A DNA stretch of 64,000 bases from NCBI RefSeq assembly GCF_006345805.1, contig NW_021832529.1, forward strand, positions 49,449-113,448. The letters run 5' to 3'. The stretch comes from Octopus sinensis. Taxonomy: Eukaryota. Each line of letters starts with the position of its first letter. The first letter of the stretch is position 1. Position numbers and translations under genes: made by a program. Below are positions 26,891 through 58,977 of the stretch, piece by piece. Under the pieces are notes generated by a model that was not told the DNA's origin, made no database searches, and saw only the letters and a list, made by a program, of their open reading frames with translations.

Positions 26891-26891
26891 A

Positions 26892-34761: not shown

Positions 34762-35089
34762 TAGAGATAAAACCACTATTAGGCAACTCAAGCAGTGATA
34801 GACATAAACTAATACATAAATAACAAAAAATATAAATATAATTAATATAATATATATATATAAAATATAAAATTTTAATTTTTATATTTTTTTTAATAAC
34901 CAAAAAGTATAAAAAAAGATAAATATAATATGAGTAACTTTTCCCTGCAAGTTTGGATATAATCCCTAATATTGTTATTATATATATATATAATATATAT
35001 ATATATATAGGTTGAGTACAGAAATTCGGGGTGAGTACTTGATAAATGTAAGCACCTGTATATACCGTTAGGTGGTGTAGGTGGTGGAG

Positions 35090-37462: not shown

Positions 37463-37876
37463 TGTAGTGATGCTACTGTGTAGGGTTCACCGCGCATGCG
37501 CAGAATGGGACTACTTCCGGGTGGCCACCGGAAGTCTTCCCCATGCACATGTGCGGGAAACGATCCCTAAGGCCCGCTAAACTCGATTCATTCTCTCTGG
37601 CCGTCAGCCCTCGTGAACAGACGTGCATTCGTAGACTCTGATAATTACACCGACTTAGCCGCGGACGACATCGAACCACTTCAACCAACGAACAAGAAGC
37701 TGTACAACAGATTCGGCTGTCGTTTTCCCATCAGATATACGTACACCATCGCAATTAATAAACAAACTGCTGTCTTTCACCGATAACCTGACTTCGTCCG
37801 TTATATCTTACTAAATTGTATGTGACAGGATCGGATCGACACCCTTTCAGTGATACCGATACCAGATCCTGTTACA
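37463..37876 (+). repeat. Solo Gypsy LTR (family 1) with 4-bp TSD AAAC, inserted in an RTE-tail repeat
   Basis: aaac|TGTAGTGATG...CCTGTTACA|aaac; uninterrupted host sequence ctgtaaaaaccatgcc at ~53900. Confidence 0.93.
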
Positions 37877-39006
37877 AAACCATGCCAAAACAGACAGTGA
37901 GGCTTTGTGTAGTCCTCTGGCTTGCCAGCTCCTGTTGAGCTGTCCAACACATTGGCATGGACAAATGGATGTTAAATGATAATGATATATAATCCAAATA
38001 AGAGAAAGAAAGACTTTGACACATCTTTAATGATCAGTACCAACTCTTTTCTGTACCAACTCTGCTTTGAATGCCAGTTTATGCAAAAGTTCAAAGTGAA
38101 AATTTATGTAATATTTGTGATCTTAGACATTAGAGTAGCACTTTCTCAGACCTTTATCAAATGTGCACTTTTACATGGTGTGTCTGCCAGACTTTGCATT
38201 TTGCTTATATCAGGAAGAAACAAAAAGTAAATAAAAGCATGGTTAGGAGATGAAAGAAAAAAATGATGACGAAAGAGGACAAGAACATTAAGAAGTTAAA
38301 GATGGAGAATTGGTAGAAGCAGAAGAAAGAGAAAGCTAAACAAATAGTTGAATGGTAGAAGTGAGTTAGTGTTTACAATTACAAGTAAACCGACAGACGC
38401 CAGTATCAAATTACAATTGATGGGTGAAATATCATTTCAGTTTAGTACAAGCGACAAAATTAAAAAGGCTAAAAGGGAAAGAAGGATGAAATTAAAAACA
38501 ATAGCAATACTAATAATAGGAAAAGGATAATCCTTACTACTAAATTATGGGGGAATGGACTAGTTGATTATATTGATCCCAATGTTTCACTGGTACTTAA
38601 TTTATTGACCTCGAAAGGATGAAAGGCAAAGTCAACCTTGATGGAATTTGAACTCAGAATGTAAAGACACAAAGCATTTTGCCTGGCATGCTAACGATTC
38701 TGCCAGCTCACTGCCTTGATAATAATAATGATACTATTAATAATAAGGACAATAATACTAGTATTATAAATAATGACAATAGCAATGATAATAATCCTTT
38801 CTACAAGGCCTGAAATTTTGGGTAGGGGTCTAGTTGATTACATTGACCCCAGTGTGTGACTGGTACTTATTTTATCAACCCCAATAGGATGGAAGACAGA
38901 GTCGACTGGGGCGGAATTTGAACTCAGACTGTAAGGCAGGAAGAGATACCACTAAGCATTTTGCCTGGCATGCTAATGATTCTGCTAGCTCTCTGCCTTA
39001 ACAACG

Positions 39007-39061
<55 letters not shown>

Positions 39062-39139
39062 CACTATTAATAATAATAAAGACAGTAATACTAGTATTAT
39101 AAATAATGGCAATAACAATAATATGAATAATGATAATGT

Positions 39140-40040
39140 TCATTAACCACTAAGGGTTCACAAAAACATTGGGGACAGTACAGGACAATACAATGTGGGG
39201 TTAGATAAAAGGCATGTAAAAAATAAAACAATCTCAATGTAAATTATAACAATGAATAATTCCCCAAAAGAAGGAGACTTCTTAGGGCTGCTTGTGGAGA
39301 TCCCACAAAAACCAGGATTGTGCTGACCACTAGGACAAGTGCTCTCTTTACATTGTCCTCCTTCAACTAACAGGTGCATGCTTAGTTGGACCATTCACTT
39401 GGACCATTCTTGCAACATTCACCCACCTTTTAGTAAAATTATGGGGAAGCAGCACTTCCCTTTCCACCCGCACTTTCCATTAAGTTGAAGGCTTGGCCAA
39501 AGAGGAAAGTGTCTGTCTTCAGCCCTTTCAATATGGTCCACCACACAACCTCGTTTGCTAAGGCTATCAAGCAAAGAAAGACAATCCTGCCACCTTCCTT
39601 CCTTTCGCTGGGAAGTCCTGCCAGGTACCCCCTGGTAGTACTGCAAAGTCAAGGATTTCTGGAAATTATCCGTAGGCCCTGGCTCAAAACCTTGAAACAG
39701 ACCAACCAGTTGATTCTAACCAATGCCCAGAATCTCCCCGAGAACATCATTGTACTCGTCTGCCACTAACCCTCTATAGAAAGCCAGAGTGGATCTTCCA
39801 CTGACTACTTTTCCTGATTGACAGAGGACTGTGAGCACCTGACAACACTCTGTTTATGCTTGATCCAAGACTGCAGCTCAGTCAAAGAGACAAACTGCGG
39901 AAAATCCCATCTGAAAAACTATGACCATACCTTCTCACCATCAAGGAAGTACTGGAGATGCCATAACTTCAGCACATGTTTGTACATCAGTAGCCACAGC
40001 ATGCCCAGCCCTCCATTCAGCAGATGTTGATAGCAAATGG
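39140..40040 (-). mobile_element. Degenerate L1/Tx1-like LINE ORF2 C-terminal region
   Basis: Minus-strand peptides NGGLGM.WL, FPQFVSLTELQSWIK and DNFQKSL..QYY.G with stops and frameshifts; recognised by resemblance only. Confidence 0.5.
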
Positions 40041-40442
40041 AGCACCTGAACAAAGGAACTCATTCCTTTCACAAAAAAAACAGAAGGGTGGAAAGTAAGC
40101 TAGCAGAAGTATTCTGCCGACCTTAGAATGTGACATGCAGAGACATAACAGAAAAGGAGAAAAAGAGGGAAGAAGTTAGTAAGGGGTAGGGTGTGCCTTA
40201 AAGAGTTAGAGTAGAAACTTAAAATTAAGGAAGAAACCAAAATTTGGTTGGGATATTTATAAAATATTTAGTTTTGAATAAACATACAGCTGGTAATGAA
40301 ATAGGGTGAATTGAAATAAGATACAATTCAAAATTAAAATATGTCTCGGAACAGTGGTAGAGTACCAAGACAGAGTTGTAAAATAAGGAGAAAAGTATAT
40401 AGTGTTGCTATTGCTATATGTAAGAATATAGATACTTATATA

Positions 40443-42189
40443 CAGGGGTTGGACAAAATAATGGAAACATCTTAAAATTTCTAACAAATTTATTTTAATA
40501 TGGGGTAGGACCGCTTTTGGCAGTATTTACAGCTTGAATTCTATGAGGTATGGACTCATACAAATTTTGATTTGTTTGCAAAGAAATTTTTGTCTATTCT
40601 TTAGCTAAATCAGTCTCCAGTTCTTGTAGTGATGATGGTTAGGATATCAACTCCTTACTTGTTTTTCTAAAATGCACCATAAATGTTCAATAATATTGAG
40701 ATCTGGGGACTGTGGTAGCCAGATAAGATGTTCAACTTCACTAGAATTTTCCTCATGCCATTCAGTAATAATTTTAGCTGTGTGAATTGGTGCATTATCA
40801 TCCTGAAAGATTGCGTTTCCCTCAAGAAACAGTTCCACAACCATAGGATGAATTTGATCAGATAAAATGCTTAAATAGTCTTGACTATTAATTCTGCCTT
40901 GAAGAGAAACCATTGGGCCAGCGGATTTCCAAGATATAGACCCCCAGGTCATCACAGATCCTCCTCCATGTTTAACAGTTGGAAGAAGGTAGTCTGGGTC
41001 AAATGCTTCTTTTGGCTGTCTCCACACATATACTTGACTGGTGGTTGGAAATAAGATAAAGGATGACTTGTCTGAGAAAATAACATTCTTCTACTGCTCT
41101 AGGGACCAATTCTGTAGGTTTTTACTCCACTCTAAATGCTTTGCAATGTTTGTTTTTGAAAGTAGTAGTTTTCTGATTGCAGCCCTCCCATGAAATCCAG
41201 TTTCATGCAGCTCCTGGTGAACAGTTTTTGTGGAAACTGGGTTCTCGAGGTGGTCATTAAGCTCTGCAGTAATTTTGGGAGATGTACTGTTGTGATCCTT
41301 TCTAACAATTCACATAAGAGTTCGATGGTCCCCATCTGAAAGTTTTCGTTTTCTTCCAGAGTTTTGTTTTGACGAGATTTTTCCCTCTTTCTCAAAGGCT
41401 GTCATTACTTTCGTGATAGTACTTTTTGATACACCAAACATTTCGGCTGTTTTCATTACACTAGTGCCTGCCATATGAGCACCAACAATTTGACCTCTTT
41501 GAAAGTCCGATAGATCTGTCATTTTAATGAATTTTAATTACCTTTTTATGATGATATCTGAAAAGAAACGGCAATTTTAGCAAAACATTAAGCAATACTA
41601 ATAATAAATCAAGAAACATAAAAATAAACAAGCTTTTGACAGTTTTATAGATATTTCAAAATTATGATGCTATTCGAAATCAAAATTAAATTCAATGACT
41701 GGCATCCATGCTAGTGGAGCGCTGAGAGTACCATACGAGCGTGATCATTGCCAGAGCAACAAGCAGGCCTCTGTGCCGATGGCACATAAAATGCACCATT
41801 TGAGCATGATCGTTACCTACGTCGCCTTACTGGCATTTGCCCTGGTGGCACACGAAAAAACATTCAAACGAGGTTCTTGCCAATGCTGCTGGACTGGCTC
41901 CTGTGCAGGTGGCACATAAAAAGTACCTGTTGAGCGTGGCCAATGCCAGTACCGCCTGACTGGCCCTCGTGCCGGTGGCATGTAAAAGCACCCACTACAC
42001 TCTCGGAGTGGTTAGCATTAGGAAGGGCATCCAGCTGTAGAAACTCTGCCAGATCAGATTGGAGTCTGGTGCAGCCATCTGGTTCGCAAGACCTCAGTCA
42101 AATCATCCAACACATGCTAGCATGGAAAGCGGACGTTAAACGATGATGATGTTGATGCTAGGTGTTTCCATTATTTTGTCCAACCCCTG
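40443..42189 (-). mobile_element. Tc1-type (DD34E) transposon with both TIRs and TA TSD; frameshifted transposase; RTE-tail insertion at ~41690-42157
   Basis: TA|CAGGGGTTGGACAAAATAATGGAAAC ... GTTTCCATTATTTTGTCCAACCCCTG|TA; HTH MTDLSDFQRGQIVGA, TVKHGGGSVM.WG, QDDNAPIH, SPDLNIIEHLW. Confidence 0.95.
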
Positions 42190-43217
42190 TATATCCATCT
42201 GTTTAGTTTGTTTTGAGCAAAAGCCTCAGAATGTTCTCTTAAAAGCTCCTATGCTTCTTGTTGTCAGCTACCACCTGTCAGTCTCATCTCCCAGTGGAAT
42301 GGTTATACAGGTGGAACTCCTTTCAGCTAAGGATAAATATAATAATAATAATAACTTGTGGATGGAAATTCGAAGGTTATCCTACATGTCTATTAGTTAG
42401 GAAGTTTTCATATTCATAAGATATCTATCATAATAATGAGCTTGTTTGTAAGTTTGTCCAAAATCATGCAACAAGAGAGTAGACGTCAGCATAAGTAAGA
42501 GTAAAAAAAAGGGAAGAGACAAAATGGTAATAACAATGAGAGAGGGATTGGTATCAAACACCTCTCGCCCTCTCCCTCTCTCTTTCTCTCTCTGAACAAA
42601 AGCCTTTTCACTTTATTGATGAACACTGCCTCGCTCTTTCTCTCACTTTCTATTTACAAATGCGCACACACACTCTCTCTTTGTCTCTCACTCTTTTCAC
42701 TCACTCTCTTTCTCTCTCTCAGCAACATTTTCATTTTTATTCAATGAACACTGATTTTTTTCTGATAAACATTAATAACAATATATAAGATAAGTAAATA
42801 AGATTTTTGCACCTCAAAATTATATTTTTTGTGTCTCTATGGATGTTTGACTTTTCTGGAAGATTTTTTTGTTTAAAAGACTGCAGCAAAGTTAATAGAA
42901 TATAAGATAAGTAAATAAGTAGTAATTTTTAAGTCATAAAATTAAAATATTGTCTATTGAAAGAAAGCTTGATAATTGTAGTGGGCTGGATGTGATGTAC
43001 CCACATCCTTTTTTCCAAGCTGAGATTTGAAATCAAATCTAAGGATTCTCACTCATCTGATCCTCCACTAGCCAAACAGGTGTGAAAGAAATTTCTTTGT
43101 CCTGTCAAAAAGTGATGAATGGGTTTCCCTTCAACCTATGACCTGAGCTGTGTCATTTAAGCTTCAAGTGGACAGGAGGTGACCTACATTGGTAGAAATT
43201 ACTCTTGTGGTATGTCT

Positions 43218-43445
43218 GGCGGCGAGCTGGCAGAAACATTAGCACGCCAGGCAAAATGCTTAGTGGTATTTCATCTGCCGCTACGTTCTGAGTTCAAATT
43301 CCGCCAAAGTCGACTTTGCCTTTCAACCTTTCAGGGTCGATTAAATAAGTACCAGTTACGCATTGGGGTCGATATAATCGACTTAATCCGTTTGTCTGTC
43401 CTTGTTTGTCCTCTCTGTGTTTAACCCCTTATGGGTAGTAAAGAA
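43218..43445 (+). mobile_element. Second tRNA-derived SINE family (inverted, diverged copies at ~38530-38720 and ~38820-39000)
   Basis: ggcggcgagctggcagaa...gagttcaaattcc (B-box-like), then gcctttca.ccttt...ggtcgat.aaataagtaccag body. Confidence 0.75.
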
Positions 43446-43489
43446 AAAGTATGTCTGTCCTTCTAGCTGTCATGACAACTATAAATACA

Positions 43490-44330
43490 GTCAGACATAC
43501 GACAGATGACAAACTGCGGCTAGCGCGATGTAGCGGCAGGCCTGTGCAAGGCCTGTGCCGTTCGCCCGCGTCTCCGCCGCCGAACCGTGCGTGAAATCGA
43601 AAGCACGAAACTAAGCGGGCGGTGTCGGCCACGTACGCGTGGACCTAGCCGCGACCGATGTTGCGAGGTACAGGCGTTCGATACGGCGACGTGGTCCGTC
43701 TCGTAAATTCCCGAAAGATGACAAACTGCGGCCGCTGCCGGTAGCAGCGGGCCTGCGCCTGCCTTCGCCCGCGCCTCCGCCGCGCTACCGCGAGGCTGAA
43801 GTGCGGCTTGAGCGAAGCTGGCGCTCTCGCCCACGTACACGTGGACGTAGGCGCGATCGATGCCGTCAGTCGCCGGGAGTGCGTGGCGATATGCACCGGG
43901 TAAAAACAGCGACGTGGTCCGACCCGTGAGTTAAGGAGGTGCTCGGACCGTAAGCAACGGATCGGCCCCGGCTGGATAGTCACGCCTCTAGGTGACCGTC
44001 GCACCCCAAGGGGGTCCAGACTAATATGTAGGGTTGTGGTTGATCGGCATAGGTTAGCGTCTCGGAGGGATGTCCTCGTAGCTCCTTTTCTGACGACGGT
44101 TAGCTCCCCGTTTGCCGGTGCAAGATCGATTCTACACGGCCGGCGCGTCCTCGAATTTCCGCCGCCGAACCGCCCGCCTTTCAGACGCTGCGTTCGCCCG
44201 CCCGTTGACGCCCGCGTTTGCCCGCCTTCGCCCGCCTTTTGAAGCTCGCCTTTGTCCGCCTTCGCCCGCCTCTGGACGTCCGCTTCTTCACGCCCGCCTA
44301 TTAGACGACCAATTTTTTGGTGTATCCAAG
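43490..44330. other. Unexplained CpG/GC-rich island with a diverged ~212-223-bp dimer and (cgcc)-rich tail
   Basis: agatgacaaactgcggc at 43504 and 43716; gcgacgtggtccg at 43686 and 43909; composition differs sharply from the AT-rich flanks. Confidence 0.8.
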
Positions 44331-44804
44331 AAGTAAATGCAAGTGTTGAGTAAATAAATTATTTAAAACACAATCCGATGCTTTCCCATTGTTTTACTTT
44401 GATGTCATCCACATGCCTATTTTATTTGCTACCTCAGCATTTTTTGCTACACCATCTCACTACATAATATTGTCTGTTTAAAGAAAGCTAAATAGAAAAG
44501 GAAGGTAATTATAAATATTTACAAATACTTGCCGATACAGTGATGTTTGTAAATATTTATGAATGAAGAATTTTGCTAAGGTGGTAAGAGTGTGAAAGAG
44601 ACAGAGATAGAGAATGTGTAGATCTTGCTTGGAAAAAAAAAGTCTCTGTGTATGCCATTAATATAATCCTGTGTAATTTTATACTTTGTATGGTTGTGTA
44701 TAGAAATATAAACAAATTAACGTACATACACACACGCACACAAATATACTCATTGTTTTGAAGTTTGTAATCTGTTGTATTAAATATATTTATCCACCTG
44801 CTAT

Positions 44805-45280
44805 GGAGAATGAATCTGATAGAAGGCGATGGTTAGCCAGAGAGAGAGACAAAGGTGAAGAACAGCCAGTCTCACTCAGGAAGAACTGGATGCAAGAAGA
44901 TTAAACAATACATTAAGGTTATTAAATCAATCACGAGAAGTGAGACAAGAGAGATGAGTGCAAAATGCAAGAAGACAGGCTTGAAGATGTCAAAATGAAA
45001 AGGAGCACCTAATTGCACAAAGGAGAGATATCCAAAAAGAGGGAGAGTGGCACAAAAGTGCCGAGATGAAACAGAAGAGAAAGCAGCAGTGAGGAGAGAA
45101 TATCTAAGAATGAGAGTATCACAAAGGCGACGATGAAACAGAAGAGGAAGCAGCACAAAGGAGAGAAATCAAGGAGAAGAATGGAAGAATTAAACGGACC
45201 ATCCAAAACAAGGCAAACTCATTGCTGGTAGGGTTTTCACTAGAAACGTACTGCTGAAGCAATTACTGAGATAAAAGTTG
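44805..45280 (+). pseudogene. Probable degenerate Helitron RepHel N-terminal (R/E-rich) region
   Basis: MENESDRRRWLARER...SLTQEELDARRLNNTLRLLNQSREVRQER, broken by frameshifts; resemblance only. Confidence 0.4.
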
Positions 45281-46435
45281 TAATGTTTTTATTTTAATTT
45301 TATTATCTGTATCATTTTCATGCTGTCATTTCTGACGGCACGGGTACACAAGTATCTAAGATTATTCTTAATACACACAAACACAACTCACATAATACAT
45401 ATCCACAAGCAATCCCACTTGATTCAATAAGTGAATACCAGTTGCTTGACCTGCTAAAAATAACAACTGGATCTGTTCAGTTAAGTATGGCTGTGGAAGT
45501 TAAGTTTGCTTTGCAACTAAGTGGTTTTGAGTTTGATCCTGCTGTGCAGCACCTTGGACAAGTGTTTTCTATCTTACCCTTAGGTCAATCAGAGCTTCTG
45601 GAATAAAAACTGGTATATGGAAGCTATATGGATCCCATTAAAGGGGCCATTCTTGGTGATAACGGTAGACTTAATCCTTAACACAACTACCTAATCCTTG
45701 AGGAACCTTCAACAGAGTCTGCTCTTCTGCTCTGATTTCAGGATAACCTCTTCCCTTCAGTTACATGGGTTCCTGAAATTAATAATGGATACTGTCCTTC
45801 TTCTTAATCATTAAAAAGAAAAAAGCTTCTAATAGTCCCTGAGGAATCAAAGTGAGCCATAATGGCCAATTCTGTTTGCTTGTATTCACTGCAATCATCA
45901 GTACTGTACACCAACTAAAATGAAATACGTTCCGATAGTCATGATAAGCACTGCATATATACATGTGCAATGTGGGCCCAGACTAGAACTAAACCTTAAC
46001 AACAGTCAAGTCAGTCACTTTATTGACTGATGGACAAAACTACAGGTTTAGTTTGACTGCTAGAAATAGGGAGAAATCTCCCTCAAATCACACCTTACAG
46101 TCTGCTTGGTCAAGGATAACATTGGACTAAACAACTACTGCTACTATTGTTGCAACAGATAAGATTGAAGATATATTTGCTATGTCACCTGGCACTCATG
46201 AATAATGATTTCTCTGAAACACAAAATCAGAAATGTGGAAGAGAAAATAAAAGTTTTAAGAACTGAAACTTTATCCTTATGTTTCACTCTGTCTACTATT
46301 TCCCAGTTTCAGTGCATTTATCACTTCCAGTCACCTCATTACTTTTAAATCCTGCCCAATTCACTACCACTCCAATCTTTGTTTTAAACAATAATTGAAA
46401 TTAAACATTTACAGAAGATATTTCTTCTTTTTCAG

Positions 46436-46536
46436 GACTGAATGTCAAGAACAGATAAAAGGTTTCTATGGCGCCAAGTTTAAGAAGTTCAGTACAGAAG
46501 AGGAAGCTCTGGCTTTTGCAGAAATTCCGGCATCAG
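46436..46536 (+). CDS. RNASEH1-like: RNase H1-like exon: hybrid-binding (Cauli_VI-type) domain, C-terminal half
   Basis: ttcttctttttcag| acceptor, |gtgaat donor; W.EC..Q+.GF.GAKFKKF.T.EEA.AF motif. Confidence 0.92.
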
Positions 46537-49500
46537 GTGAATAGAATTTTAGTGCTGTTTGGTATAATCAGTAGAGTGTTGAATGAATATCTTGTGGTAT
46601 TTAGCTCAGTTTTTTATGTTCTGAGTTCAAATCCTAGTTAGGTCAAATTAACTTTCATCCTTCTGGGGCTCAATAATGGTCCAGTACTGAGATTGATATA
46701 GTCAGCTGTTCTCTCATTGTGACTTTGTGTCTGTATCAAAAAATAATTATTGTGCAGGTTTGGTTGTGTTGTGAAGAAGCTTGCTTTGCAATCATATGAT
46801 TTCAGGTTCAGTCCTACAATGCTTGCATTTTGGGCAAGTGTCTTATACTATAGTCCAGGCTGACCAATACCTTGTGAGTGAATTTGGTAAACAGAACATG
46901 GACGATGCCAGCGCCGCCTTGACTGGATTCCGTGCCGGTGGCATGTAAAAAGCACCAATCCAATTGTGGCTGTTGTCAGCCTCACCTGGCACCTGTGCTG
47001 GTGGCACGTAAAAAGCACCCACTACACTCACGGAGTGGTTAGCATTAGGAAGGACATCCAGCTGTAGAAACATTGCCAGATCAGACTGGAGCCTGGTGCA
47101 GCCTTCTGGCTTCCTAGATCCCCGGTTGAACCATCAAACCCATGCTAGCATGGAGAACGGACGTTAAACGATGATGATGATGAAACTGAAGCCCATCACA
47201 CAAAGTGTGTCTGTCTTGTGTTTCTGCTTGACAACCAGAGTTAGTTTGTTTATGTGCCCATAACTTTGTAGTTTGACAAAAGAAACTGATGTAGTAAGTA
47301 CCAGACTTTTAAAAAATTAGTACTGGCTCACTTTGTTCAACTAAATCGTTCAAGGCAGTGCATGGCTGCAATCCAAAAGCTGAAACAAATAAAGATGAAA
47401 GATTGCTGTTGTGGCAGGATTAGTAGTGTCAGACAAAATGCTGTGCAGGTTTTGTTCCATCTCTTTCTATTGTGAGTTTAAATCCCACTATGATAAACTT
47501 TGTCTTTCATTTGTTGAGGGCCAATAAAAACAAAGTTCCAGTTAAGTACTATATTGGGCCACCATTAGTCAAGGTTAACCACATATCTGCTCTCGTGTGT
47601 ATGTTTGGACAAGATTTTTGAAGAAGACTAGCAGATACCTATTCCAGTCACCCCATCAACTTGATGCCCTTGTTATTTGCAACCCTTAAGCAAGGTAATA
47701 TTTTCCCTCATAGCCAGACATGTTTTTCACAGGAGATTAGAGATAAATAGCATTGTTTTAATGATGGAGATGTTCATTTACAATCATCACATCACACACA
47801 CACAAGGAACTTCTTTTAGTTTCCATCTTACAAATTCATTCATAAAGCTTTCTTTGGCCCAGGACTATAGCAGAAGATATTTGGTCTAGGTGCCACTGAA
47901 CCTGAAACCATGTGGATGACTAACAAATTTCTTAAATACACACACACTCTCTCTGTCTCTCAGTGGATATATATTTAATAGTCTTTTCCCATTTTTGCTC
48001 TCCCAAGTAATTAGTGTTTTTTTGTTAATATTATGTAACTAATTTGCTATTTTATTTATATATTAACAGACAAAACTCTCTCCAGTGTAGCAAAATCTAT
48101 TCAACCGATTGTGAAAAAACTCATGTCCAGAGTGAACGAATTCTCTCTTCTCTGTCAGACACTGGTGTCAATGCTGGCTGATTTGGATGACTCAGAAGAA
48201 AGCAAAGAATTTTCAACATTAGCATGTAATGTTGAAAATGATTTGGCTAAGTTGACAACAAGTGTTAAACTGGTAATTGATTCTAAGCTTTTGACAGGAA
48301 CTACTTCATCTGAAGATGCATCAGAATCTCCTGAAAAGAAAAAGAGTGTTCAAAAAGGAGGTTTTACTGGTAATGTATCATGTTTTCATTCTCCTTTTAA
48401 GAGATTGTTAATATTTTATTATTATTTTTTTTAAATGAAAACTTGCAGCTTATTTTGCTTGGTATGATAAAAAGTGTCAGCTTCTCCTAGCCAGCAGGCT
48501 AAAGTGACACTTGTTTACTGATCATGGTTCAAGAACCCTGTGGAGAACTCTTGCAGTTCCAAGCAATGCTGATTTTTACAGGTGTTCTATTTTTACATTT
48601 GTACCAATCTTCTTGAGCTGTATTGGTATTTGATAACTGCTGATTCTTCCACCTGCACCAATCACTATTTGTATCATGTCCACTCTCTCCATTGCCCATA
48701 ACCTGTGTATTTCCCACTTCAATTCATCATAGTTGTTCACTTTTTCTTTTTCTTTCTCTTCGATCCTGTTATCACCAGACATGCTTGTCAATTATCAGGC
48801 ATATTTTATTTTATTTTCTGTTCACCACAACAATGTTAGGTTTCCATTGTCTAATCTGATGATCACACTGAATCATTGTATTTCACAGGGTTTTGCAATC
48901 TTCATTCGCAGTAATTCCCTCTGAAATTTGGTCATACCATGTCTGATCTTTCTAGGCCATAATTTCCACAAATCTCCAATGGATCATTCTTGCCTCATTG
49001 TCTTGTCGTCTTTGTATTTACAGTGTGCTGATTTTGGTTATTCACTAACAATGCACACTGTTTCACTCCTCTCACCATTCATTTGGCATTTGTCACTCTT
49101 AGTTGTGCTATCAATTTTGCACTTTAAATAGTTTGTCCTCAATGCTTGTTCTTGTGCTGTGCATATAAGTGCTTCTGTGTCTGTCTTGGAGCTCATATCT
49201 CTTGCAAACTGACTGTACTTTTTTTTTTGTGTTCTTTTCTTCTTTAGATTTCTCTTTCTTAACACAATTATCAATTTTGATGATTTTGGACTTCTTCACA
49301 TGTATCAGCAATGGTTCGGTGGCATTTTTTACATATCATCCTAAGCTGCTTTTCTCTGCTTCAACACAATCCCAGCAACTGATCAAATCCTTCCCATCCT
49401 TTCTTCTGGACAAGTACAACCTATATGTATCACTCTTGGAATAAATTGCTCCATGCACTGTCAATAGTTTCCATGACTTCATAATCATACTCATCAGTCA

Positions 49501-51920
49501 ATAGTTTCTGTGTCTTTGAATCCATACTCATCATCATCATCATCATTATTATTATTGCAATCCCTACCAAGATCTACTTTGCCATTCACCTCTCCATGGT
49601 TAATAAAATAATGTACTTGTCAGTTACAAGGCAGGTTTTGTGCCTATACTAGAAACAATTATTATTATTAGGGATTGGTAGAATCAGTAGAGCATCAAGA
49701 AAATTTCTCACATGTGTTTGCTCTGGCTCTTTATGTCCTGAGTTCAAATTCTGCCAATGCCAACTTTGTCTTTCATCCTTTCAGAGTTGACCTTGAACTC
49801 ACCAATCAAGTAAGTTTAAGGTCAATGGTTTTGACTAACCTGCTCCCCTCAAAAATGTTGGCCTTGTGCCAAAATTAAAATCATTGGTATAGTCTCTCAC
49901 CAACGCTTCTCAGCCTCTGGGTCACAAACATGCTATTCCTTCACTCTGCCTTTTCTACCACTGATGCTGTGGTTTCTGCTCTTTGGAGCTGGCTGGTCTC
50001 AAGCCAATTTCTCTCATCTCTATCTTACTCTCCTCTGCCATATTCTGTCTAACTACTATGCCCAAGCCTACTTCACCAGGACATCAGTCTTTTGAAATCT
50101 ACTTGCTACTCTTCTTTTCCTGAAGTTGTATATAAACATAAACCACATTGATCTCATTGGTTTTGGAAGATTTGTCAGATATTCGTAGAGCCCTTCCTCA
50201 CAGTAAAATTGATAAAAAAGAAACAGCTTAACAATTACATTCACTCATTTGTCTCACCCTAAATATTCTCCCTAGAGATTACACTCTCCATAATTTCTAG
50301 CCAGTTCATAGATGATTTATATAAAGAGCCAGGCAACAATATATTTTTTATAATTTCTATAAAGAGCCAAGCTGCAATATATTTTTATATATAATTTATG
50401 CAAATTTTTTATTTACAGGGAAAAAATTGGCTGATGATGATAAAGATGTTTTCATTGCTGGCAGCTGTCTCAACAATGGTAAACCTGATGCCTCAGCTGG
50501 ACTTGGTGTCTACTGGGGAGAAAGAGAAAAGTAAGTTTTTTGTTGTTGTTTTGTTTCTTGTTAGCGCTTGACTAATAGTCACATAACAACATGGGATGGA
50601 TGGGGATAGAGCTAGAAATATAGAATGTGGTCCCCCATTTCTATTTATTCTTTGGGAACAGAAGGATTATTGTGCCTTTATAGATTTGAATTGTTTCAAT
50701 ATATCGCTTAGTAATGTTTCTATAAGCCATAACCTATCTGTCTTTTGTATATTTAGGACTACTTTATATAGTTTATCTTTTATGTAAAACAGTAAGGCTG
50801 TGATATGATGGGAAGAAACTTAGCAGATTTTCCTAGGAGATTGAGTGGGTAGAAACAACAAGGATGAGGGGGAATAATTTCTTTGGCATCAAGGAGGAAT
50901 TGCAAGTGAAAAAGCATCTGTTGGGGTACATCTGTGTTGAGGAAAATAAGGAGTCTCCGATTTTACAAATTTATAGTTATGTCACATTAAATTACTCTTT
51001 TGGACTTAAGGGTTGAACTTAGTTTTATATGGGGTTTTTTTAGGTTACATCAGTGGCTGGTTTCAAATTTCCCCCTCAGGTAATGTGTGGTCCATCCATC
51101 ACATATAGATTCCTTTGTTTGCTCAGTTGAAGATTTTGTCAGTGTCAGGAACAACATTGCCTGGACTGAGTTGCAGTATGGTGGTCATATTAAGATAATG
51201 GCACCTAATTTACTCCTTTGATTCATGTATATCTTTGTCATAATAAATATCCCTCACCCCTCATACTCTCCATCACAAATTAACTGGTAAGTCTTTACTT
51301 TATGTATTGAAGTTTGTTAAAATGTTGGTTTGTATATTGATAGGCGTTTCAGGGTGTGAACATTGTATATACTCTTTTTGTGTATGAATGTGTGTATATA
51401 GTGTGTGTAAATGTGTATATTTGTATGTCTGTAAATGTGTATCAGTCGTATCATTTTTGTGAAACCTGTCTTCCAGTTCGCTTTACTCACCCCTCTCTGC
51501 ATGTATATTTGTATGAACACAGATTGGCGGGGAGGCCTAGTAGTTAGTGTTGAACTTGTGAATGTGAGATCATTTCCTGGACTGGGCTGCTTGTTGTGTT
51601 CTTGAGTAAAACATTTTGTCTCACGTTGCTCTGCAATCACTTTGACATCTGATGTATGACACATCATCCATCTGTACAAACAGTGTCAATTTGATGGAGG
51701 GAGTGACCTAATGTGCAGTACAAACTTTTGATCTCTATAAGCATCATCTGTGCAGGTGTTTCATTGAGAGTCCATGTATGTACAGACACACATATATTTC
51801 TCAGCACTATTTTTAACATAAAAATATGAATCGCTATTCTGTTCACATATCTCTTTCTTTCCCCCTCTCTCTCTCTGTTTGTCTTTCTCTGTATAATGAC
51901 ATGTGTATACACATTCACAC

Positions 51921-51980
<60 letters not shown>

Positions 51981-54900
51981 GTATGAATATGACACAATAT
52001 TATCTATCTGTCTGTATACATATGTATGTTTATACAGAAACTCATTTATCAACAAAATCATTAAAGATATTTAGTCAATTGGAGATATGACGATAGAAAG
52101 CATGAAATGTTTTATTTTCAAAAGCATTAGCTTTATTTAACTAAATGTTTCTAACAATCACATAGAGAAATTTGTGTTTATCTGTGTACATACATTCACA
52201 CATACTGAGAAAGAGTTACACAATGAATACAGTTATATTCATAAGAATGTGTATGTGTGTAGTGTATCATTGTATAGGGAATGAAAGACTTGACAGACTG
52301 AAAGAATGGAGATTCTTATTTTTTTCCTTCCAATATTGCAATAAGCTACTTCTTCTAAAAGATCAGTCTGTCTGTCTATCTACTTACCAGCTATCTACTT
52401 ATCACAATTTTTTTACTTTGAATGTGCACGATGGTGTATAGTGTGTGTGTGTGTATGATGATATATGTCGGATTGTGTGTATGTCTGTAGGTGAGTATAT
52501 ATGATGGTGTATGTTGCTTTGTGTATGTATATGATTGTATTTGAAGATGTATGTTGGTTTATTGCTTCATATGATGAAAAGCAGTGTAATTTTTATTAGT
52601 CAGCAGAATTACTAAGTCTAGCATGCTCTGTTTTTACAGGAACACAAGTGAAAGACTTGGTGGCAAACAAACAAACAATCGCGCTGTATTATATGTAAGC
52701 TATTCTATTTAAGTTTTCAAGTGAAAATACTGAGAGAATTATTTGTTGGGAAGCTCCTCATTAATTGACACCTTGTGTGTGGAGTGGGGGTGACTTCATC
52801 TGAAGGCACAAAAACTCTTCCCCCTTCTTGCTATTGTAACTTCAACCTTTATATTTAAGCATCTAGAGATGTTTTTTTGTTTTTGTTTAGTCTTTTTCTA
52901 AAATGAAATTATTTTGTTTGCAGGCTGCCATTAGAGCTGTTGAACAAGCAAAGGCCAAAAATATTTCAAACCTTACTATCAACACTAGTAGTGAGTTCAT
53001 AATGAACAGTAAGTTATGTTTGTTTCTCCTATGAATCAACTAATCCTTAACCTATTTAGTGTTTGTGGATGTTATTCCCTAACTTCTTTCATTTGGAACC
53101 CAAGTATTTTACTTCTATCAGTGAATGTCCAGAGGATCTCTTAGTGTTGTGTGTGACTGCATCCTATTGCAAAATTACTATATGTTAAGGTTGAAGAAGA
53201 AAATTGTGCATATTATTTTAGCACCAGATCGATGCTGATTGAACAAAGCAGACTATCCTGTTTTGTTTTGTTTTTTTATTTCTTAAATGTATCTAGAACT
53301 ACATTTATCCAATGTGTCTATCCATTTTTAAGATGGTAGGGAGTGATTTGAGGGAGATCAGATTGCTATTTCTAGCATGTTAAGTAATTATAGAGCCTCC
53401 CTCATTGGCCTGGGGATTAGGTATTTCCAGAATACCTCTTTTACAATATTCACCTTTAGCAGCAGGGCTTTTTACATGTAGTCTTCCAGGAACAAATTGG
53501 CAGGACTTACTACAGATGTTTATATTGTTTATTGGTCAGCTTCATTGTAGCAAATAACAGCTGGAGCTACACTTATCTTTGCTCTTCACAAAATATTTGT
53601 ACAAGTAAATCTGTTACAGGTAATATTTATGTGGAATACTTTTGTTTTTATTTTTCAGTTTGTTTATCTACTTCTCATTCATCATAATATTGTTATTTCT
53701 GTTTGTATAGCTGTGCATGGGGAGACTCATTGAACCAAGTGACACCATAGTCACGACCATTGCCAGTGTCATGTGAATGGCACCTGTGAAATCGTAGTCA
53801 TGGCTGTTACTGGTGTCATGTAAAAGGTGCCCATGCCAGTGGCACATAAAAAAGCACCCATTACACTTTCGGAGTGGTTGGTATTAGAAAGGGCATCCAC
53901 CTGTAAAAACCATGCCAAATCAGACTGGAATCTGGTGCAGCTTTCCAGCATGCTACTTCCAGTCAAACCATCGAACCCATGCCAGCATGGTAAACAGACA
54001 TTAAATGATGATGATAATGATGATAGCCACACCCACATCTCTCATGTCACAGGTGTTATTTTATTAACCATACATATCTTGGAACTATTGGGTCATGCCA
54101 TAAATAATGTGGTTTTTTGTACTTCTTTCATTTTTCAAAATTAAGATAAACAAAATTCTTTTCCAGTCTAAAATATACTCTCCTTCATTTTCTACAATGC
54201 TCTTCCATATATCTGGTACACTTGCCCCTCTTCCAAAATTCACTTGTCTGTGACGAAAAATACTCCTCCAGTACAGTTCTGACCTCATCTGCAGAATTCC
54301 TATTTTTTAGCCCAAATAATTTTGAAGACTGCAGAATAAATGATAATCAGATGGGGCAATGTCCGGTGAATATGGTTTCCCATTCAAACTGCTCAAGCCT
54401 TTGGAATGTCATCCTTGCTATATGTGGCTGAGCATTATTCTGATGGAAGAACACCTTTCGTCTTGAAACCAAAAATAGTTGTTTTTCTTTTAGTGCTGAC
54501 TTAAGTTGCTCAAGCTGCTCACAGTAGATCTCCTTTGTTACTGTTTGGTTTGGGTTTAAAAGTTCAATGTGGACTAAACCTTTCATATCCCACCATACAG
54601 ATAACAACACATTATGTGGTGCCAGTGTTTCTCCTTTTCCTACCCACTGTCTTCAGTGCTTGACATGTTTATAGAGAACCCATTTCTTGTCACCAGTCAC
54701 TACTTGGTCCAAAAAAGTTCATTTGTGAGATGTAACAGCAAAGAAGAACACCCATTCACTCTCTGCGCGCAATTAGACTCAGGAAGTTTGTGGGGGACCC
54801 ATTGACCCAATTTGCTGACTTTTCTAATGGCACACAGGTGTTGATGAATGGTTGAATGACCAAATCCAAGTTTCTCTGCTAGTTCCTCAACAGTTACAAT

Positions 54901-55838
54901 GGGATTTTGTTCCACCAGGGTTTGCAGGATGTCCTTGTTGGGCTCTACAGATCTTCCAGAATGAGGCTCGTCTTCTAGGCTGTAGTTTCTGGCTCGGAAT
55001 TTCTGGAACCACTGTTGATACTGGCTTATGCTTATTTCTGAACCCCATATACTGCATTAATATACCTTGCAATTTCTGTTGCTTTGTTGCCTTTATTGAA
55101 CTTATAAAGCATAATATACCGAATATGCTCCTTTGTCATTTCCATAACAGCTTTGACAAAATAACTGTTAAAATTGCACTGTACTCTTCAAAACTTGCAC
55201 TAAGAATAAGCACAAGGTAAAATTAGAAACAAAGTGAGGGTTGACAATAGGAAATACATCTGGCTGTAGAAAATCTGCCTTAACTATTTCAGTCTGATCC
55301 ATGCAAGTATGGAAAAATGGATGTTAAATTATGATGATGGTGGTTTCTCTGGTGTTTGCTGTCATTATTGACTTCCATGATAATTACTTTGTGTATTTGT
55401 GTATCTTAATCATGAGAGAAGTGGGGCCTTAACCTGAGCATCAACACTTCAGAGCTTGCAATAAATTTAAATTAAAAGGAACCAAGAGATTAACACAAAT
55501 ACTTGCAACAGAATAAGTTAGAGGCCATTAGTGACCAGAGGGTAGTGTTACGCTGGGTGGGATTTTAAATGTAACACCAAAAAGTTAGGCCTAAGACAAT
55601 AATGTTAAATCTGTTCCTTCTCTCCCTCACACCAGGTATAACTAAATGGTTGGAGGGTTGGAAAAAGAATAACTGGATGAAATCAAATGGAAAAGAAGTG
55701 ATAAACAAAGAAGAACTGCAGGAATTGGATAAGAAATTGGAGGGAATCAATGTTAAATGGGTAAGTTTAAGCAGGACGAACTGGGAAGCTAAAAGAAAAC
55801 TCTATCATGACATCTAAACCAACTGAAGGATTTTATTC

Positions 55839-55875
<37 letters not shown>

Positions 55876-58072
55876 AAACATGTTTGATTGTGTGCTTTGT
55901 TTTTTTTTTCCATTGTGGTCTAATTAGAAGAGGTTAAGATTACTTATCAAGGTTTGCAAAGATTTTGGTAAGAGATTAGAAAATCTGACTGTAATTTTGG
56001 AGGAGAAAAAATTTTTCAGTCTGTGTGCTTTTCACCTTTCCTACTGATCATCTTGATGATATAGTAGAAGTTGATGATGGTATGAGGGGTTTCTTCCATA
56101 TGTTGCAGACTGTTAGGTTTGGTTGTGTGAGCAGTGTGGAAGGACATATCTAGGAGAATGGTTTCAGTCCCACATTTAACTGTCTGATGAGTCAGAGGTG
56201 AAACATGTGTTGTGAAGGGTCATCAGTGTAGAACTGGTAGAGTGTCAACCAGTGAGTTGAGGTACCAGAGAACTGGCAAGGGTTGTTGTGCTTTGATTAG
56301 CTGTAAGTTGGAGCATTCTGTGAGGTGCAACTCTAAAAATGTTGTTGTTTTAACCCTAATTGAACAGACTTATGATCAAAGGTATTCTAGCCAAGGCCAT
56401 GCATCTTTTCTGAAGTATGTCCTATTCCAAGACAGCAGGGTGTGATTTAAGAGAAATTTGGCTTTTTCTAGCAAGTTGTTACTACTTAGATGCTCTCTCC
56501 TCCCTTTTCTCTGATAATGAAGTAAAAGCTTTGAGGTGAGAAATAGATCAATAATTTTTTAATATTTAATTTTATGGATTTGGGCAGGTGACAACACAAA
56601 TTAGTGCAAAATTTAGGGATGGAAAACTGCTCATCCTCAACAGTAGCTGCATTGGTGTAGGAGGAGTGAGAGAGGAAAGAAATGTGATGAGAATAAGTAC
56701 AAAGAAAGGTGAGGCAAGATGTCATCAGTGTAAAATAATTGGTAGTTGAACTACTGTTGATGTTGGAGAGGTTTGAAGAAAAGTAGTGGCTATAAAGAAA
56801 CTTAGCAGGGAGACTTAGAGCCACAGTAACTGGAAGTCTTTTTGCTTCCACTCTCTCCTCTTCTCATCTGGTTATCAACCAAATAATACTTTTCAGTGTG
56901 TGAAGGTGGAATATAGAATGTAGTCTGAACAACAGATGAACTGGAAATAGATGAGAAATAGCTGGCACAGAAAAGAATAAAATTTGAATGAGGGAGGAGA
57001 AAAGCAAGTATGCATATGTACACCCCTGCCACACACATCCTTAACTCTCTTAAGTTTGTTTCAACTACTGAATGAACTAGCACAAAGAATTACAATGTTC
57101 CAGATGATCTATTCTCATTGACAGATTGTCAAAGAACTCTAGAAGAATTAAATGTCATTTTAATCTCTCATCAAAAATTTGAGTAGATGCCTAGAAAATT
57201 TTTCATGTCTAAAAATGTTAGTAATAACTTTCTATTATTCAAAGAAACAAGAAACTTTTCTTTAATAACCAATGAAAATAGTCATAAACAGTTGTTATTA
57301 TATATTGCCTAGCACTTAGAAGAAAGGGGTTTTAAAGAAAATAGTGTATTTGAATGGTTGTTTTTAATTTAAAAAAACACTATTTTATGAATGAATCAAT
57401 GCTTAAAATTTTAGACATGAATTTGAAACAGAAAAGGCAAGATACCTACTTAACTCTTTTGAGAGAAATATTAGTATAATTTGTAACTTGATTAACCAAG
57501 GAATGGTCAGTACTTAATAACAAACCAGTGGGACTGGTTTATTGTAATTAGAATTATTATTAAAAGAAAGAAAAGTGTTGGCCTTGTGCGAAAATTAGAA
57601 AGAATTATCAATATGAATTGTGTTCATGGCCCATGTAGGCCCTCTAAGAGTGGTTAAGTTGGCTGCTTCAAGTTGATTGCTACAGAAAGAACTAGGGCAG
57701 GAAGGGAATTCCAATGGGATGTTATTCAGGGAAGGGAGGGAGTTGGAAATGATTATTGTAGGCCTGGGAATACAATATGCATGTTTCAAATTGGTACTAA
57801 TAATGTTTAGAGATTTTTAAAATTATTATTTTATTTAATTTTATAGTTTAATGAGAGTTTCTCTAATTTCTATTCTCAGTCTCCGCATAGGAGAATAAAA
57901 ATAGATAGGCTGTGGATAGCCTCCTCCTCTTTACATCAACAAATAAATATAAAAATTATTTTGATTGTATATTATTTCTATTTCCTAGGTCCATGTGGAT
58001 AAATGTTGTGCTGGAAACGAAGCTGCTGACAAATTGGCCAATAAAGGAGCAAAACTTCCTCTACCTGAGTAG
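46436..58072 (+). CDS. RNASEH1-like: Spliced RNase H1-like gene (hybrid-binding domain, long linker, RNase H fold) with catalytic residues substituted; 5'-incomplete. Exons 46436-46536, 48070-48369, 50419-50530, 52640-52694, 52924-53008, 55636-55760, 57989-58072
   Basis: All introns GT-AG with compatible phases (2,1,1,2,0,1,0) and no stops. Spliced protein: (W)TECQEQIKGFYGAKFKKFSTEEEALAFAEIPAS-D-[99-aa linker]-GKKLADDDKDVFIAGSCLNNGKPDASAGLGVYWGEREKNTSERLGGKQTNNRAVLYAAIRAVEQAKAKNISNLTINTSSEFIMNSITKWLEGWKKNNWMKSNGKEVINKEELQELDKKLEGINVKWVHVDKCCAGNEAADKLANKGAKLPLPE*. Confidence 0.93.
48070..48369 (+). CDS. RNASEH1-like: RNase H1-like exon: 300-nt connection/linker exon
   Basis: Open 300 nt between taacag| and |gtaatg with phases 1/1, fitting both neighbouring exons; overlaps ORF 48111-48434. 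Confidence 0.78.
48415..49530 (-). mobile_element. R4/Dong-type (REL endonuclease) non-LTR retrotransposon 3' fragment in intron
   Basis: TEALICTAQEQALRTNY.KCKID...DKC...GE.SETV..IVSEC (CCHC region), GDNRIEEKEKEKVNNYDELKWEI, IVIGA.G, then (TAA)n-like tail near 48415-48430. Confidence 0.8.
50419..50530 (+). CDS. RNASEH1-like: RNase H1-like exon: first strand of RNase H domain (catalytic D replaced by A)
   Basis: atttacag| and |gtaagt; VFIAGSCLNNG...AGLGVYWG versus canonical VYTDGxCxxNG...AGxGVYWG. Confidence 0.93.
52640..52694 (+). CDS. RNASEH1-like: RNase H1-like exon: QTNNRA helix (catalytic E replaced by V)
   Basis: tttttacag| and |gtaagc; RLGGKQTNNRAVLY versus canonical RLPGxQTNxRAEI. 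Confidence 0.93.
52924..53008 (+). CDS. RNASEH1-like: RNase H1-like exon: AA..A+EQA...TDS region (catalytic D replaced by S)
   Basis: tttgtttgcag| and |gtaagt; LTINTSSEFIMN versus canonical LxxxTDSxFxxN. Confidence 0.93.
54086..55220 (-). mobile_element. Degenerate mariner (DD34D-type) transposon in intron
   Basis: GQWVPHKL, LLSVWWDMKG+VH.ELL, FHQNNAQPH motifs; TIR-like tattgggtcatgccataaat at 54086. Confidence 0.85.
55636..55760 (+). CDS. RNASEH1-like: RNase H1-like exon: basic protrusion (W..GWKKN.W...NGK.V.NK)
   Basis: ctccctcacaccag| and |gtaagt; overlaps ORF 55602-55817. Confidence 0.95.
57989..58072 (+). CDS. RNASEH1-like: RNase H1-like last coding exon (HV...GNE.AD.LA..GA, stop TAG)
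   Basis: tttctatttcctag| acceptor; several AATAAA hexamers within ~270 nt downstream. Confidence 0.93.
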   Translation, partial: VHVDKCCAGNEAADKLANKGAKLPLPE

Positions 58073-58977
58073 ATTTTCCTGCATGTTGTTAATTGGAATG
58101 TCAACAAATAAATCATAAAGTCACACACACACAAACACAGTCTCTCTCTCTTGCACAGATATAGTGATAAGCATAATCTTACAATAATACTTTCCAAACA
58201 TCCTCTCACAAAGATATATAGTAGTATTTCTACAATAAAAGATATATGCATTCATAATTTAGTTCATGTGGTTATTTCTTGTTGGTGCGTCAAATAATTA
58301 TGATAAAAGTGGCATAATTGAAATATGTTTACAATAAAATAGCAGAGAAAATATAAAGACTCCAGTTACAAAGAAAAAGTGATTAGCCAGTCATCTGGCA
58401 AACAATGTGCTATTCTGATACTTTCTGTGGGTCTGTTTCTCTTTTCTAACCAAAATTAGTTTTTATGTCTGTGTATCATCATTATTTTTATATCCCATTT
58501 TTCAGACAGACATAGGTTGGACAAGACTACAACACTAGCAAATCTACCCATCTATGATGGGGACATAAAATGAGGGAGGGCGGTCACAAGAGCAGTATGT
58601 ATTGAGAAATGTATAAATGGACTTGATAGATTATTGGGTGATGTCTTAAAGAAATCACATTATTGTTGGTGATGCAGCATTCTATTGCAGCTACATGACA
58701 TGTTTGCGACTAAGTGACGTGATGACAATTCACTCCCGAACTGAAATAAGCTCCTAGCCCCTGTATCCTGAATGGTTATGGGGACCACACCTAACAAAAG
58801 CCAGACCTTCCTTCAATCACTACACAAAAAGTATTAAGAAAAAAAATGTTATTTAGATATACTTTTATTTTAGTTGTTTACGCTATTTTATGCAGGCTTA
58901 TAGTCTTAAACATTCAAAGTTCACAAATTTCCTTATTTAAATTGTGAATCATATTCCTTTCGATAATATCAATATGA

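Follow-up and report, generated by a model that had tools for sequence, protein, structure and literature searches.

RNase H1 carrying the D210N substitution is catalytically dead and is a standard laboratory tool for mapping R-loops and RNA:DNA hybrids, and its binding-deficient control is the W43A/K59A/K60A/D210N mutant. Here we describe a gene of Octopus sinensis that may be a natural counterpart of this engineered protein. It lies in a stretch of 64,000 nucleotides (the window), namely positions 49449-113448 of the unplaced scaffold VCDQ01002521.1 in assembly GCA_006345805.1, the last 64 kb of that scaffold. The gene, which we call the window copy, is derived from RNASEH1; seven of its exons lie at 46436-58072 on the forward strand and exon 1 at 13085-13137. 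Like engineered D210N RNase H1, the window copy is predicted to be an RNase H1 scaffold without cleavage, and the best structural matches of its model, the human RNase H1-hybrid crystal structures, are themselves D210N mutants. Unlike the engineered protein, it is natural, combines three catalytic substitutions with the loss of a histidine, and evolves rapidly; with its altered Trp43 it may resemble the binding-deficient negative control as much as the D210N probe. Full-text literature searches returned no paper pairing ribonuclease H1 with the octopus species discussed here, nor RNase H1 with the term "pseudoenzyme", and a natural counterpart of dead RNase H1 has no earlier description in the literature searched.

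Canonical RNase H1 (human RNASEH1, 2QK9/6VRD; XP_014778914 of O. bimaculoides; GAB1604283 of Argonauta hians) shares with the window copy both Pfam domains, the fold and the architecture, and the octopus family sits in the same ancestral RPS7-RNASEH1-COMMD neighbourhood; human RNASEH1 presumably also adjoins RPS7. By contrast, the window copy has Asp145, Glu186, Asp210 and His264 (human numbering throughout) replaced, carries arginine at the position of Trp43 and has lost the mitochondrial start. It is also one of several copies, and its ratio of nonsynonymous to synonymous substitution rates (dN/dS) exceeds 1, the canonical gene having a value of about 0.06. In retroviral and Ty3/gypsy reverse transcriptases, the connection or "tether" domain is a degenerate, non-catalytic RNase H fold. 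In these domains, as in the multidomain proteins P0047 and P0011 described below, the fold was kept after loss of the carboxylates, but inside one polypeptide, whereas the octopus duplicates are separate cellular RNASEH1-derived genes. Lineage-specific duplication of RNase H1, as in octopus, has also occurred in Arabidopsis, where the paralogues RNH1A/B/C retain canonical activity and split the cell compartments among them (bioRxiv 10.1101/662080). The octopus copies differ from these in having lost catalytic residues and the mitochondrial start.

An earlier note on this stretch, made from the letters alone, had proposed an intron-containing RNase H1 homologue with replaced catalytic carboxylates and an intact fold and frame, and this description was borne out. 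All seven exons that it had placed at 46436-58072 (forward strand) have AG/GT borders and compatible phases, and their frame is open until the TAG at 58070-58072. The model stood as far as it went but was incomplete, the coding exon at 13085-13137 being needed for XP_036355017.1 (304 amino acids; P0040), which is reproduced exactly by translating the eight exons. This first coding exon lies about 33 kb upstream of exon 2 and was located by tblastn with the RefSeq protein; a motif scan for the start of the hybrid-binding domain (FYAV..G) missed it, the sequence there having diverged to SDYPVKKG. In a search among 5.8 billion proteins, the translation was identical to the O. sinensis RefSeq entry "ribonuclease H1-like". 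The gene is already annotated automatically in RefSeq, where isoforms X1-X5 correspond to XP_036355017 to XP_036355021, and the splice positions of its eight exons match those of the O. bimaculoides gene. None of the run-level transcript assemblies among the homologues of the window protein was octopus-derived, and Rfam and tRNA scans of the window gave no matches. The parts of the gene are as follows.

13085..13137, forward strand: exon 1 of RefSeq isoform X1, MSDYPVKKGREPGVHET plus CG; encodes the hybrid-binding domain's N-terminal half
13138..46435, forward strand: intron 1, about 33.3 kb, full of transposon remnants (fragments of reverse-transcriptase and helicase open reading frames, ORFs)
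46436..46536, forward strand: exon 2, TECQEQIKGFYGAKFKKFSTEEEALAFAEIPAS; C-terminal half of the hybrid-binding domain, with Phe58, Lys59 and Lys60 retained
48070..48369, forward strand: exon 3, linker (connection) region, with an 18-bp in-frame deletion relative to sister copies
50419..50530, forward strand: exon 4, RNase H strands beta1-beta2; GCT at 50457-50459 gives Ala at D145
52640..52694, forward strand: exon 5, start of helix A; GTA at 52686-52688 gives Val at E186 (NRAV for NRAE)
52924..53008, forward strand: exon 6; AGT at 52987-52989 gives Ser at D210 (TSS for TDS), the ancestral GAC differing at all three bases
55636..55760, forward strand: exon 7, basic protrusion and DNA-binding channel; equivalents of Trp221, Trp225, Ser233 and Asn240 retained in the alignment to human RNase H1
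57989..58072, forward strand: exon 8, with a 6-bp in-frame deletion and CAT changed to TGT; GAC at 58028-58030 gives Asp274; stop codon TAG at 58070-58072
58107..58112, forward strand: polyadenylation signal AATAAA, 35 nt past the stop codon

The four catalytic codons listed here read exactly as the earlier note had claimed. In the alignment to 6vrd, the positions of D145, E186, D210 and D274 are occupied by Ala, Val, Ser and Asp, so that a single one of the four carboxylates required by RNase H1 is left, and the exon 4 motif is VFIAG in place of the V[YF]TDG of canonical octopus copies. His264 in the flexible loop is gone through a two-residue deletion (VDKCCAGNE compared with VPGHSGFIGNE); one O. 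vulgaris copy, L006, retains it. With the loop histidine and all metal-binding carboxylates but one lost, the window protein is almost certainly unable to cleave RNA:DNA hybrids. Such a state is unusual: the roughly 190 best representatives taken from a library of 1.84 billion proteins included 163 RNase H1-type domains with the set DEDD, and degenerate catalytic sets were rare outside the octopus genes, being mostly extra tandem domains within one protein. The examples are P0047 (ENA contig, 538 amino acids) and P0011 (JGI contig, 474 amino acids), which contain two to three tandem RNase H1-type domains. In both proteins, DEDHD is found in the first of these domains and degenerate sets in those that follow (VESHR and HEDHE; SDDES).

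The earlier note had also claimed a hybrid-binding domain and a full RNase H fold; the fold was recovered, and the hybrid-binding domain is recognised by Pfam in an altered form. The Pfam RNase_H domain PF00075 is matched with 95 bits (cut-off 25.8; E 3e-27 to 4.7e-27), and PF01693 (Cauli_VI, the hybrid-binding domain) with 57 bits (2.9e-15), compared with 76 bits in the canonical octopus proteins. The closest solved structure is human RNase H1 (6vrd, 4e-44). An AlphaFold2 model built with 29 homologues has a predicted local distance difference test score (pLDDT) of 92-98 over the RNase H domain, and its best Foldseek matches, human RNase H1-hybrid complexes, have target-normalised template modelling (TM) scores of 0.92-0.94 with root-mean-square deviations of 1.1-1.2 A. 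The fold is thus preserved according to this model, with its active site gone. Substitutions cluster in the strands and the helix that build the catalytic and RNA-side groove. In the alignment to human RNase H1, the phosphate pocket and the DNA channel have Lys for R179 and retain T181, N240, W221, W225 and S233; R179/T181/N240 form the phosphate-binding pocket and W221/W225/S233 the DNA-binding channel. In the hybrid-binding domain, Tyr29, Phe58, Lys59 and Lys60 are retained, and Trp43 is Arg in the exon 1 used by RefSeq and Trp in the exon-1 copy at 7283-7335. Judged from its sequence, we class the window copy as an RNase H1-derived paralogue and not as an RNase H1 enzyme, because the defining catalytic residues are lacking despite the shared architecture, fold and neighbourhood. 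Linker residues 50-126 (exon 3), the connection region of cephalopod RNase H1, were modelled as two long helices with a pLDDT of about 76-83, not as a disordered segment.

The exon 1 of the window copy is itself one member of a tandem array, which comprises the following elements.

2798..15900, forward strand: exon-1 tandem array of about 1.94-kb units (spacing 1.93-1.94 kb), with six exon-1 copies and a partial seventh unit
3411-3462, forward strand: exon-1 copy w1, 1-bp deletion
5349-5401, forward strand: exon-1 copy, intact
7283-7335, forward strand: exon-1 copy, intact, Trp retained
9219-9270, forward strand: exon-1 copy w4, 1-bp deletion
11148-11198, forward strand: exon-1 copy w5, 2-bp deletion
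13085-13137, forward strand: exon-1 copy w6, intact, the one in RefSeq isoform X1

By tblastn, the window has six exon-1 copies, compared with seven in the chromosomal O. sinensis copy L003 and one in O. vulgaris. Homology with the ancestral exon-1 region, as seen in O. bimaculoides and O. vulgaris, extends over no more than about 380 bp per unit. The translated part of the exon has changed from MPFYAVKKGRVPGVYETW to MSDYPVKKGREPGVHET(R/W), with 8 substitutions over its 53 coding nt, compared with 7 over the 153 nt of untranslated sequence next to it (p = 0.026). The split last codon has gone from TGG to CGG, placing Arg at Trp43 in five of the six copies and leaving Trp in one. The upstream ATG, the start of the mitochondrial presequence, is AAG in all six copies and survives unchanged in O. 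bimaculoides and O. vulgaris L006; of the two in-frame starts from which RNase H1 derives its mitochondrial and nuclear isoforms, the window exon-1 copies are thus left with the downstream one alone. On its 5' side the array adjoins LTR (long terminal repeat) retrotransposon pol remnants at 1-2784 (forward strand), which include ORFs of reverse-transcriptase (1301-1966) and integrase-like (2029-2784) type. The same layout of pol remnant and exon-1 array occurs in L003.

The earlier note had proposed a natural "dead RNase H1". The gene is not the only one of its kind and does not have a conserved residue pattern; it belongs to a young, recombining tandem family of RNASEH1 duplicates, limited to the O. 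vulgaris / O. sinensis lineage among the species examined. Argonauta hians has a single canonical RNASEH1 between RPS7 and a COMM-domain gene (COMMD), and the fetched O. bimaculoides locus (L005) has one canonical RNASEH1 adjoining RPS7, the region read stopping short of the downstream neighbour. In O. vulgaris, the RPS7-COMMD interval holds at least three copies, namely a parental-type copy and at least two dead ones (L006 and L007). On O. sinensis chromosome CM016872.1, a parental-type copy is followed by the dead copy L003 (CM016872.1:33271047-33368012) with its seven-unit exon-1 array. Further O. sinensis dead copies lie on two unplaced scaffolds: one carries the window copy and, upstream of it, a second dead copy, L001 (XP_029655422), and the other carries L004 (XP_036355104). 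Since the window copy and L001 are on one scaffold, they are certainly separate loci. O. bimaculoides split off about 34 million years ago, and O. vulgaris and O. sinensis separated about 2.5 million years ago (PMC10700109). Given the single gene at the O. bimaculoides and Argonauta loci and the several copies in both O. vulgaris and O. sinensis, the sequences place the duplication later than the first of these splits and earlier than the second. In the O. bimaculoides locus, a fragment of exon 4 (VVFTDGCCFHNGKHGASAGLGVF) is present a second time at 37206-37274, downstream of the genuine exon 4 of the one canonical gene by about 190 nt.

The residues found at the catalytic positions differ from copy to copy.

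D145: Ala (GCT) or Tyr (TAT)
E186: Val, or retained Glu
D210: Ser (AGT, three changes from GAC) or Asn (AAT)
D274: Asp, Glu or Asn
H264: Cys, or retained His

The earlier note had looked to relatives for an active DEDD gene and for other copies with its own residue pattern. An active DEDD relative exists, and so do copies with the same Ala and Ser changes, but the pattern as a whole is not constant. The exon-4 variants (IA/IY) and exon-6 variants (TSS/TNN) occur in all four combinations among the four O. sinensis copies, and some are common to O. vulgaris, which indicates that exon variants have been reshuffled among the copies by recombination or gene conversion.

The window copy and L001 are 98.55% identical over 19.7 kb, with the differences concentrated in exons, and in general the introns of the dead copies are about 99% identical and the coding divergence is four- to sixfold higher. 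Aligning each exon with its 400-nt flanks gave the following levels of substitution.

Window and L001: exons 4.2%, flanks 0.7%
Window and L004: exons 5.2%, flanks 0.8%
Window and L003: exons 5.1%, flanks 1.1%
Window and O. bimaculoides: exons 8.4%, flanks 6.4%

In exon 4, 11 of 112 nt differ between the window and L003, all 11 differences being nonsynonymous, compared with 4 differences in 800 nt of flanks. The excess is limited to coding sequence: in the 3' untranslated region (UTR), no difference was found between copies in the 400 nt past the stop codon. Reconstruction of minimum changes gave 57 nonsynonymous and 4 synonymous changes among the four O. sinensis copies (binomial p = 0.002), and 106 and 7 among all six dead copies (binomial p = 1e-5); per site, the rates were 2.2% for synonymous positions, 1.8% for flanks and 8.4% for nonsynonymous positions. 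Pairwise dN/dS between dead copies was 2.4-9.5 (NG86, LWL85 and maximum likelihood), single values being imprecise with synonymous counts of 2-7. Compared with the active O. bimaculoides gene, the window copy gave 1.2-1.9; the canonical pair O. bimaculoides-Argonauta gave 0.04-0.10 (about 0.06). The independent O. vulgaris assembly tells the same story, with 43 nonsynonymous and 2 synonymous differences between L006 and L007. With Argonauta as outgroup, synonymous sites were saturated (dS 1.1-2.5), and we used the nonsynonymous relative-rate test and not lineage omegas; it assigned 37 nonsynonymous changes to the window lineage and 12 to O. bimaculoides (p = 5e-4). The five catalytic codons (D145, E186, D210, D274 and H264) have themselves undergone at least 9 changes, compared with 2.1 expected (p = 4e-4).

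Several processes other than selection could in principle produce such a pattern. Clustered multi-nucleotide mutation was addressed by merging neighbouring substitutions. With merging within 10 bp, the exon excess was still 2.5-4.4-fold (p <= 1e-3 in most pairs), and with merging at 3 or 10 bp it was 2.5-5.7-fold in most pairs, L003-L004 no longer being significant; such clusters also cannot account for the limitation to coding sequence. Old exons surrounded by introns homogenised through conversion were ruled out as a neutral account, the synonymous sites of the exons being as similar as the introns. The substitution spectrum showed neither a GC bias nor an A-to-G excess. GC-biased gene conversion mimicking selection was ruled out by strong-to-weak changes at least as numerous as weak-to-strong ones, and hard-wired RNA editing or cDNA-mediated conversion by the balance of A>G (11) and G>A (14) changes and the identity of the 3' UTR between copies. 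Conversion, editing, GC bias and clustered mutation each fail to explain an excess confined to nonsynonymous sites of the translated region; the data point to selection that is positive and diversifying, not purifying. The earlier note had preferred selection to neutral decay, and this preference is upheld by dN/dS of 2.4-9.5 against 0.04-0.10 and by a nonsynonymous divergence four to six times that of introns; the selection is, however, of a diversifying and not of a conserving kind. Amino-acid change faster than that of neutral DNA is usual in genes engaged in conflict, whether in immunity, with selfish elements or in reproduction.

We hold with considerable confidence to the descriptive and evolutionary account of a dead, diversifying RNASEH1 family. 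Its window member has lost catalytic residues with its frame maintained and its protein apparently under selection, as in a selected pseudo-enzyme; window exons 1 (w6) to 8 are free of lesions and dN/dS is well above 1, which is not what characterises an unprocessed pseudogene. Selection thus probably acts on the window gene, making it a pseudo-enzyme rather than a neutral pseudogene. As an overall explanation, we lean towards a selected and diversifying family of dead RNase H1 proteins that may act as non-cleaving binders in genetic conflict. The specific mechanism, a non-cleaving binder or decoy in such a conflict, is a conjecture and is put forward more tentatively. The window protein would be nuclear or cytosolic and would bind without cleaving, outside mitochondria. 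Its target might be RNA:DNA hybrids, gripped via the retained DNA-side contacts of the catalytic domain, or alternatively a partner that normally engages RNase H1, and the conflict might involve retroelements, viruses or antagonism of the active enzyme. The changes in the groove, together with the retained DNA-side contacts, would fit a nucleic-acid binder with altered specificity. Snake-venom phospholipase A2 and conotoxins combine accelerated coding exons with conserved introns, and OASL, the PARP-like domain of ZAP and the N-terminal domain of APOBEC3G are rapidly evolving inactive paralogues in host defence. The octopus family resembles the venom genes in exons that diverge faster than introns with dN/dS above 1, and the defence paralogues in a fold kept after catalysis was lost; both serve here as leads only.

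A number of observations weigh against this explanation. No single "dead" residue pattern is common to the copies, hence no one conserved new active surface is evident, and the phosphate-pocket residues also differ among copies (GKQTNNR, GRQKSNR and GRQTNIQ). Signs of decay are present, three of the six exon-1 copies (w1, w4 and w5) being frameshifted and exon 8 of L003 carrying a 1-bp frameshift. The low synonymous counts make individual ratios uncertain, as noted, and multi-nucleotide events might inflate the nonsynonymous counts. The window copy is known here from RefSeq and ENA gene models only. It is colinear with L003 at 98-99% identity, and it may be a haplotig of L003, since the O. sinensis assembly has 5.2% duplicated benchmarking universal single-copy orthologues (BUSCOs; PMC10700109). 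Finally, the earlier note had named a reader of hybrids or R-loops among the possible roles. In the human hybrid-binding domain, W43A abolishes hybrid binding (PMC10639055), and the change of Trp43 to Arg in the annotated isoforms weakens a simple role of this sort for the octopus protein, as do the altered N-terminal half of the hybrid-binding domain and the lost mitochondrial start codon.

The annotated parental genes add a further complication. The O. sinensis model XP_036364734 (P0045) extends over a 134-kb range and reads D-E-D-E, without the histidine and with a frameshifted tail; the O. vulgaris model CAI9732839 (P0003) extends over 113 kb and reads D-E-S-D. Both parental-type models draw their last exons from downstream dead copies, L003 in O. 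sinensis and L006 in O. vulgaris, and the canonical D-E-D-D set with its histidine was found in no annotated protein of either species. The borrowed 3' exons may be an annotation artefact of tandem duplicates or may reflect real read-through splicing. A 99-amino-acid gene model between the parental and dead copies was considered as a source of parental exons 7-8 and rejected, no such protein being present among the RNase H1 homologues. The RNASEH1 locus is either wrongly modelled in two octopus reference genomes that are in wide use or genuinely unusual, and if parental transcripts truly borrow these exons, the active site of RNase H1 in this clade is altered (D-E-D-E without His; D-E-S-D). 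It is conceivable, if somewhat doubtful, that an arms race in the O. vulgaris species group drives the dead family and that parental transcripts may at the same time end in dead-copy exons. The dead proteins could then, for example, be non-cleaving binders or decoys aimed at the RNA:DNA intermediates of retroelements or viruses, or at factors that themselves target RNase H1.

The same gene models are the starting point for the alternative that survives best, according to which the window copy is not autonomous. The tandem copies together would be transcribed as a single large unit, with splicing from the parental RNASEH1 5' exons to alternative sets of downstream exons, and the dead exons would be alternative cassettes, or the sole available 3' end, for the parental gene. 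XP_036364734 and CAI9732839 do join parental-type exons (FTDG, NRAE) to 3' exons in L003 and L006, and the full D-E-D-D set with His is missing from the annotated proteins of both species, as this arrangement would have it. Yet the window copy has a full set of exons of its own, including first exons that supply a start codon and a splice donor, followed by a polyadenylation signal, and in RefSeq it stands as a gene in its own right, with five isoforms. Where genes are duplicated in tandem, annotation commonly produces chimeric models, and the parental 3' exons may sit in the roughly 47 kb (O. sinensis) and 59 kb (O. vulgaris) upstream of the DNA that was read. We regard this alternative as unlikely.

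Neutral decay appears to us less probable still. On this account, a recent segmental duplication produced redundant, unprocessed pseudogenes in which stop codons have yet to arise, and the residue losses reflect relaxed constraint. The damage to catalytic, hybrid-binding and targeting features alike would be expected from it, as would the frameshifts in w1, w4, w5 and L003 exon 8 and the variation of catalytic-position residues between copies. Neutral decay predicts, however, that exons diverge like introns with dN/dS around 1, and we observed four to six times the intron rate and dN/dS of 2.4-9.5, with a synonymous rate equal to that of introns. It also predicts stop codons: 6.7% of nonsynonymous changes would create one, so that about 7 are expected for the 106 changes seen, and none was found in the six dead copies. 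Of the five coding indels, four are in frame (18, 3, 3 and 6 bp), that is, multiples of three. The earlier note had named a dN/dS near 1 with frameshifts in relatives as the signs that would speak for decay; the ratio lies far above 1, and a frameshift is present in exon 8 of L003. An assembly artefact, in which errors or mis-polishing produced the differences confined to exons or the codons for Ala, Val and Ser, might be suspected in an unplaced scaffold that is 98-99% identical to a chromosomal locus in an assembly with many duplicated BUSCOs, but it is highly improbable, as the O. vulgaris assembly, which is independent and nanopore-based, contains the same Ala (GCT) and Ser (AGT) codons and exon-4/exon-6 variants in L006 and L007, and sequencing error would neither be limited to nonsynonymous coding sites nor preserve the frame.

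If selected and diversifying dead RNase H1 proteins are indeed what these loci encode, several RNase H1-derived genes without catalysis would have arisen within less than about 34 million years, their frames kept open and their proteins changing faster than neutral DNA. Provided that they are expressed, they would constitute a natural experiment on the RNase H1 scaffold without cleavage, possibly a new class of cephalopod retroelement or R-loop regulator, and a clear instance, beyond venoms and immune receptors, of accelerated evolution specific to exons. The signal of selection is strong and unexpected; the clade is narrow, and part of the copy structure may be haplotypic.

Some further features of the window concern the introns of the gene. 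Intron 1 holds a Pif1/Helitron-like helicase fragment and two non-LTR reverse-transcriptase fragments (14837-15346, 18108-19022 and 27995-29729, all on the reverse strand). At 43480-44320, the AT-rich intron is interrupted by some 0.85 kb of GC-rich sequence that contains GCCTTCGCCCGCC-type repeats; this block is found in the window and in L003 and not in the sister copies L001 and L004. A SINE-like (short interspersed nuclear element-like) sequence with GACGTTAAACGATGATGATG-type tails recurs in the introns of the gene, at 41700-42160, 46900-47190 and 53740-54020.

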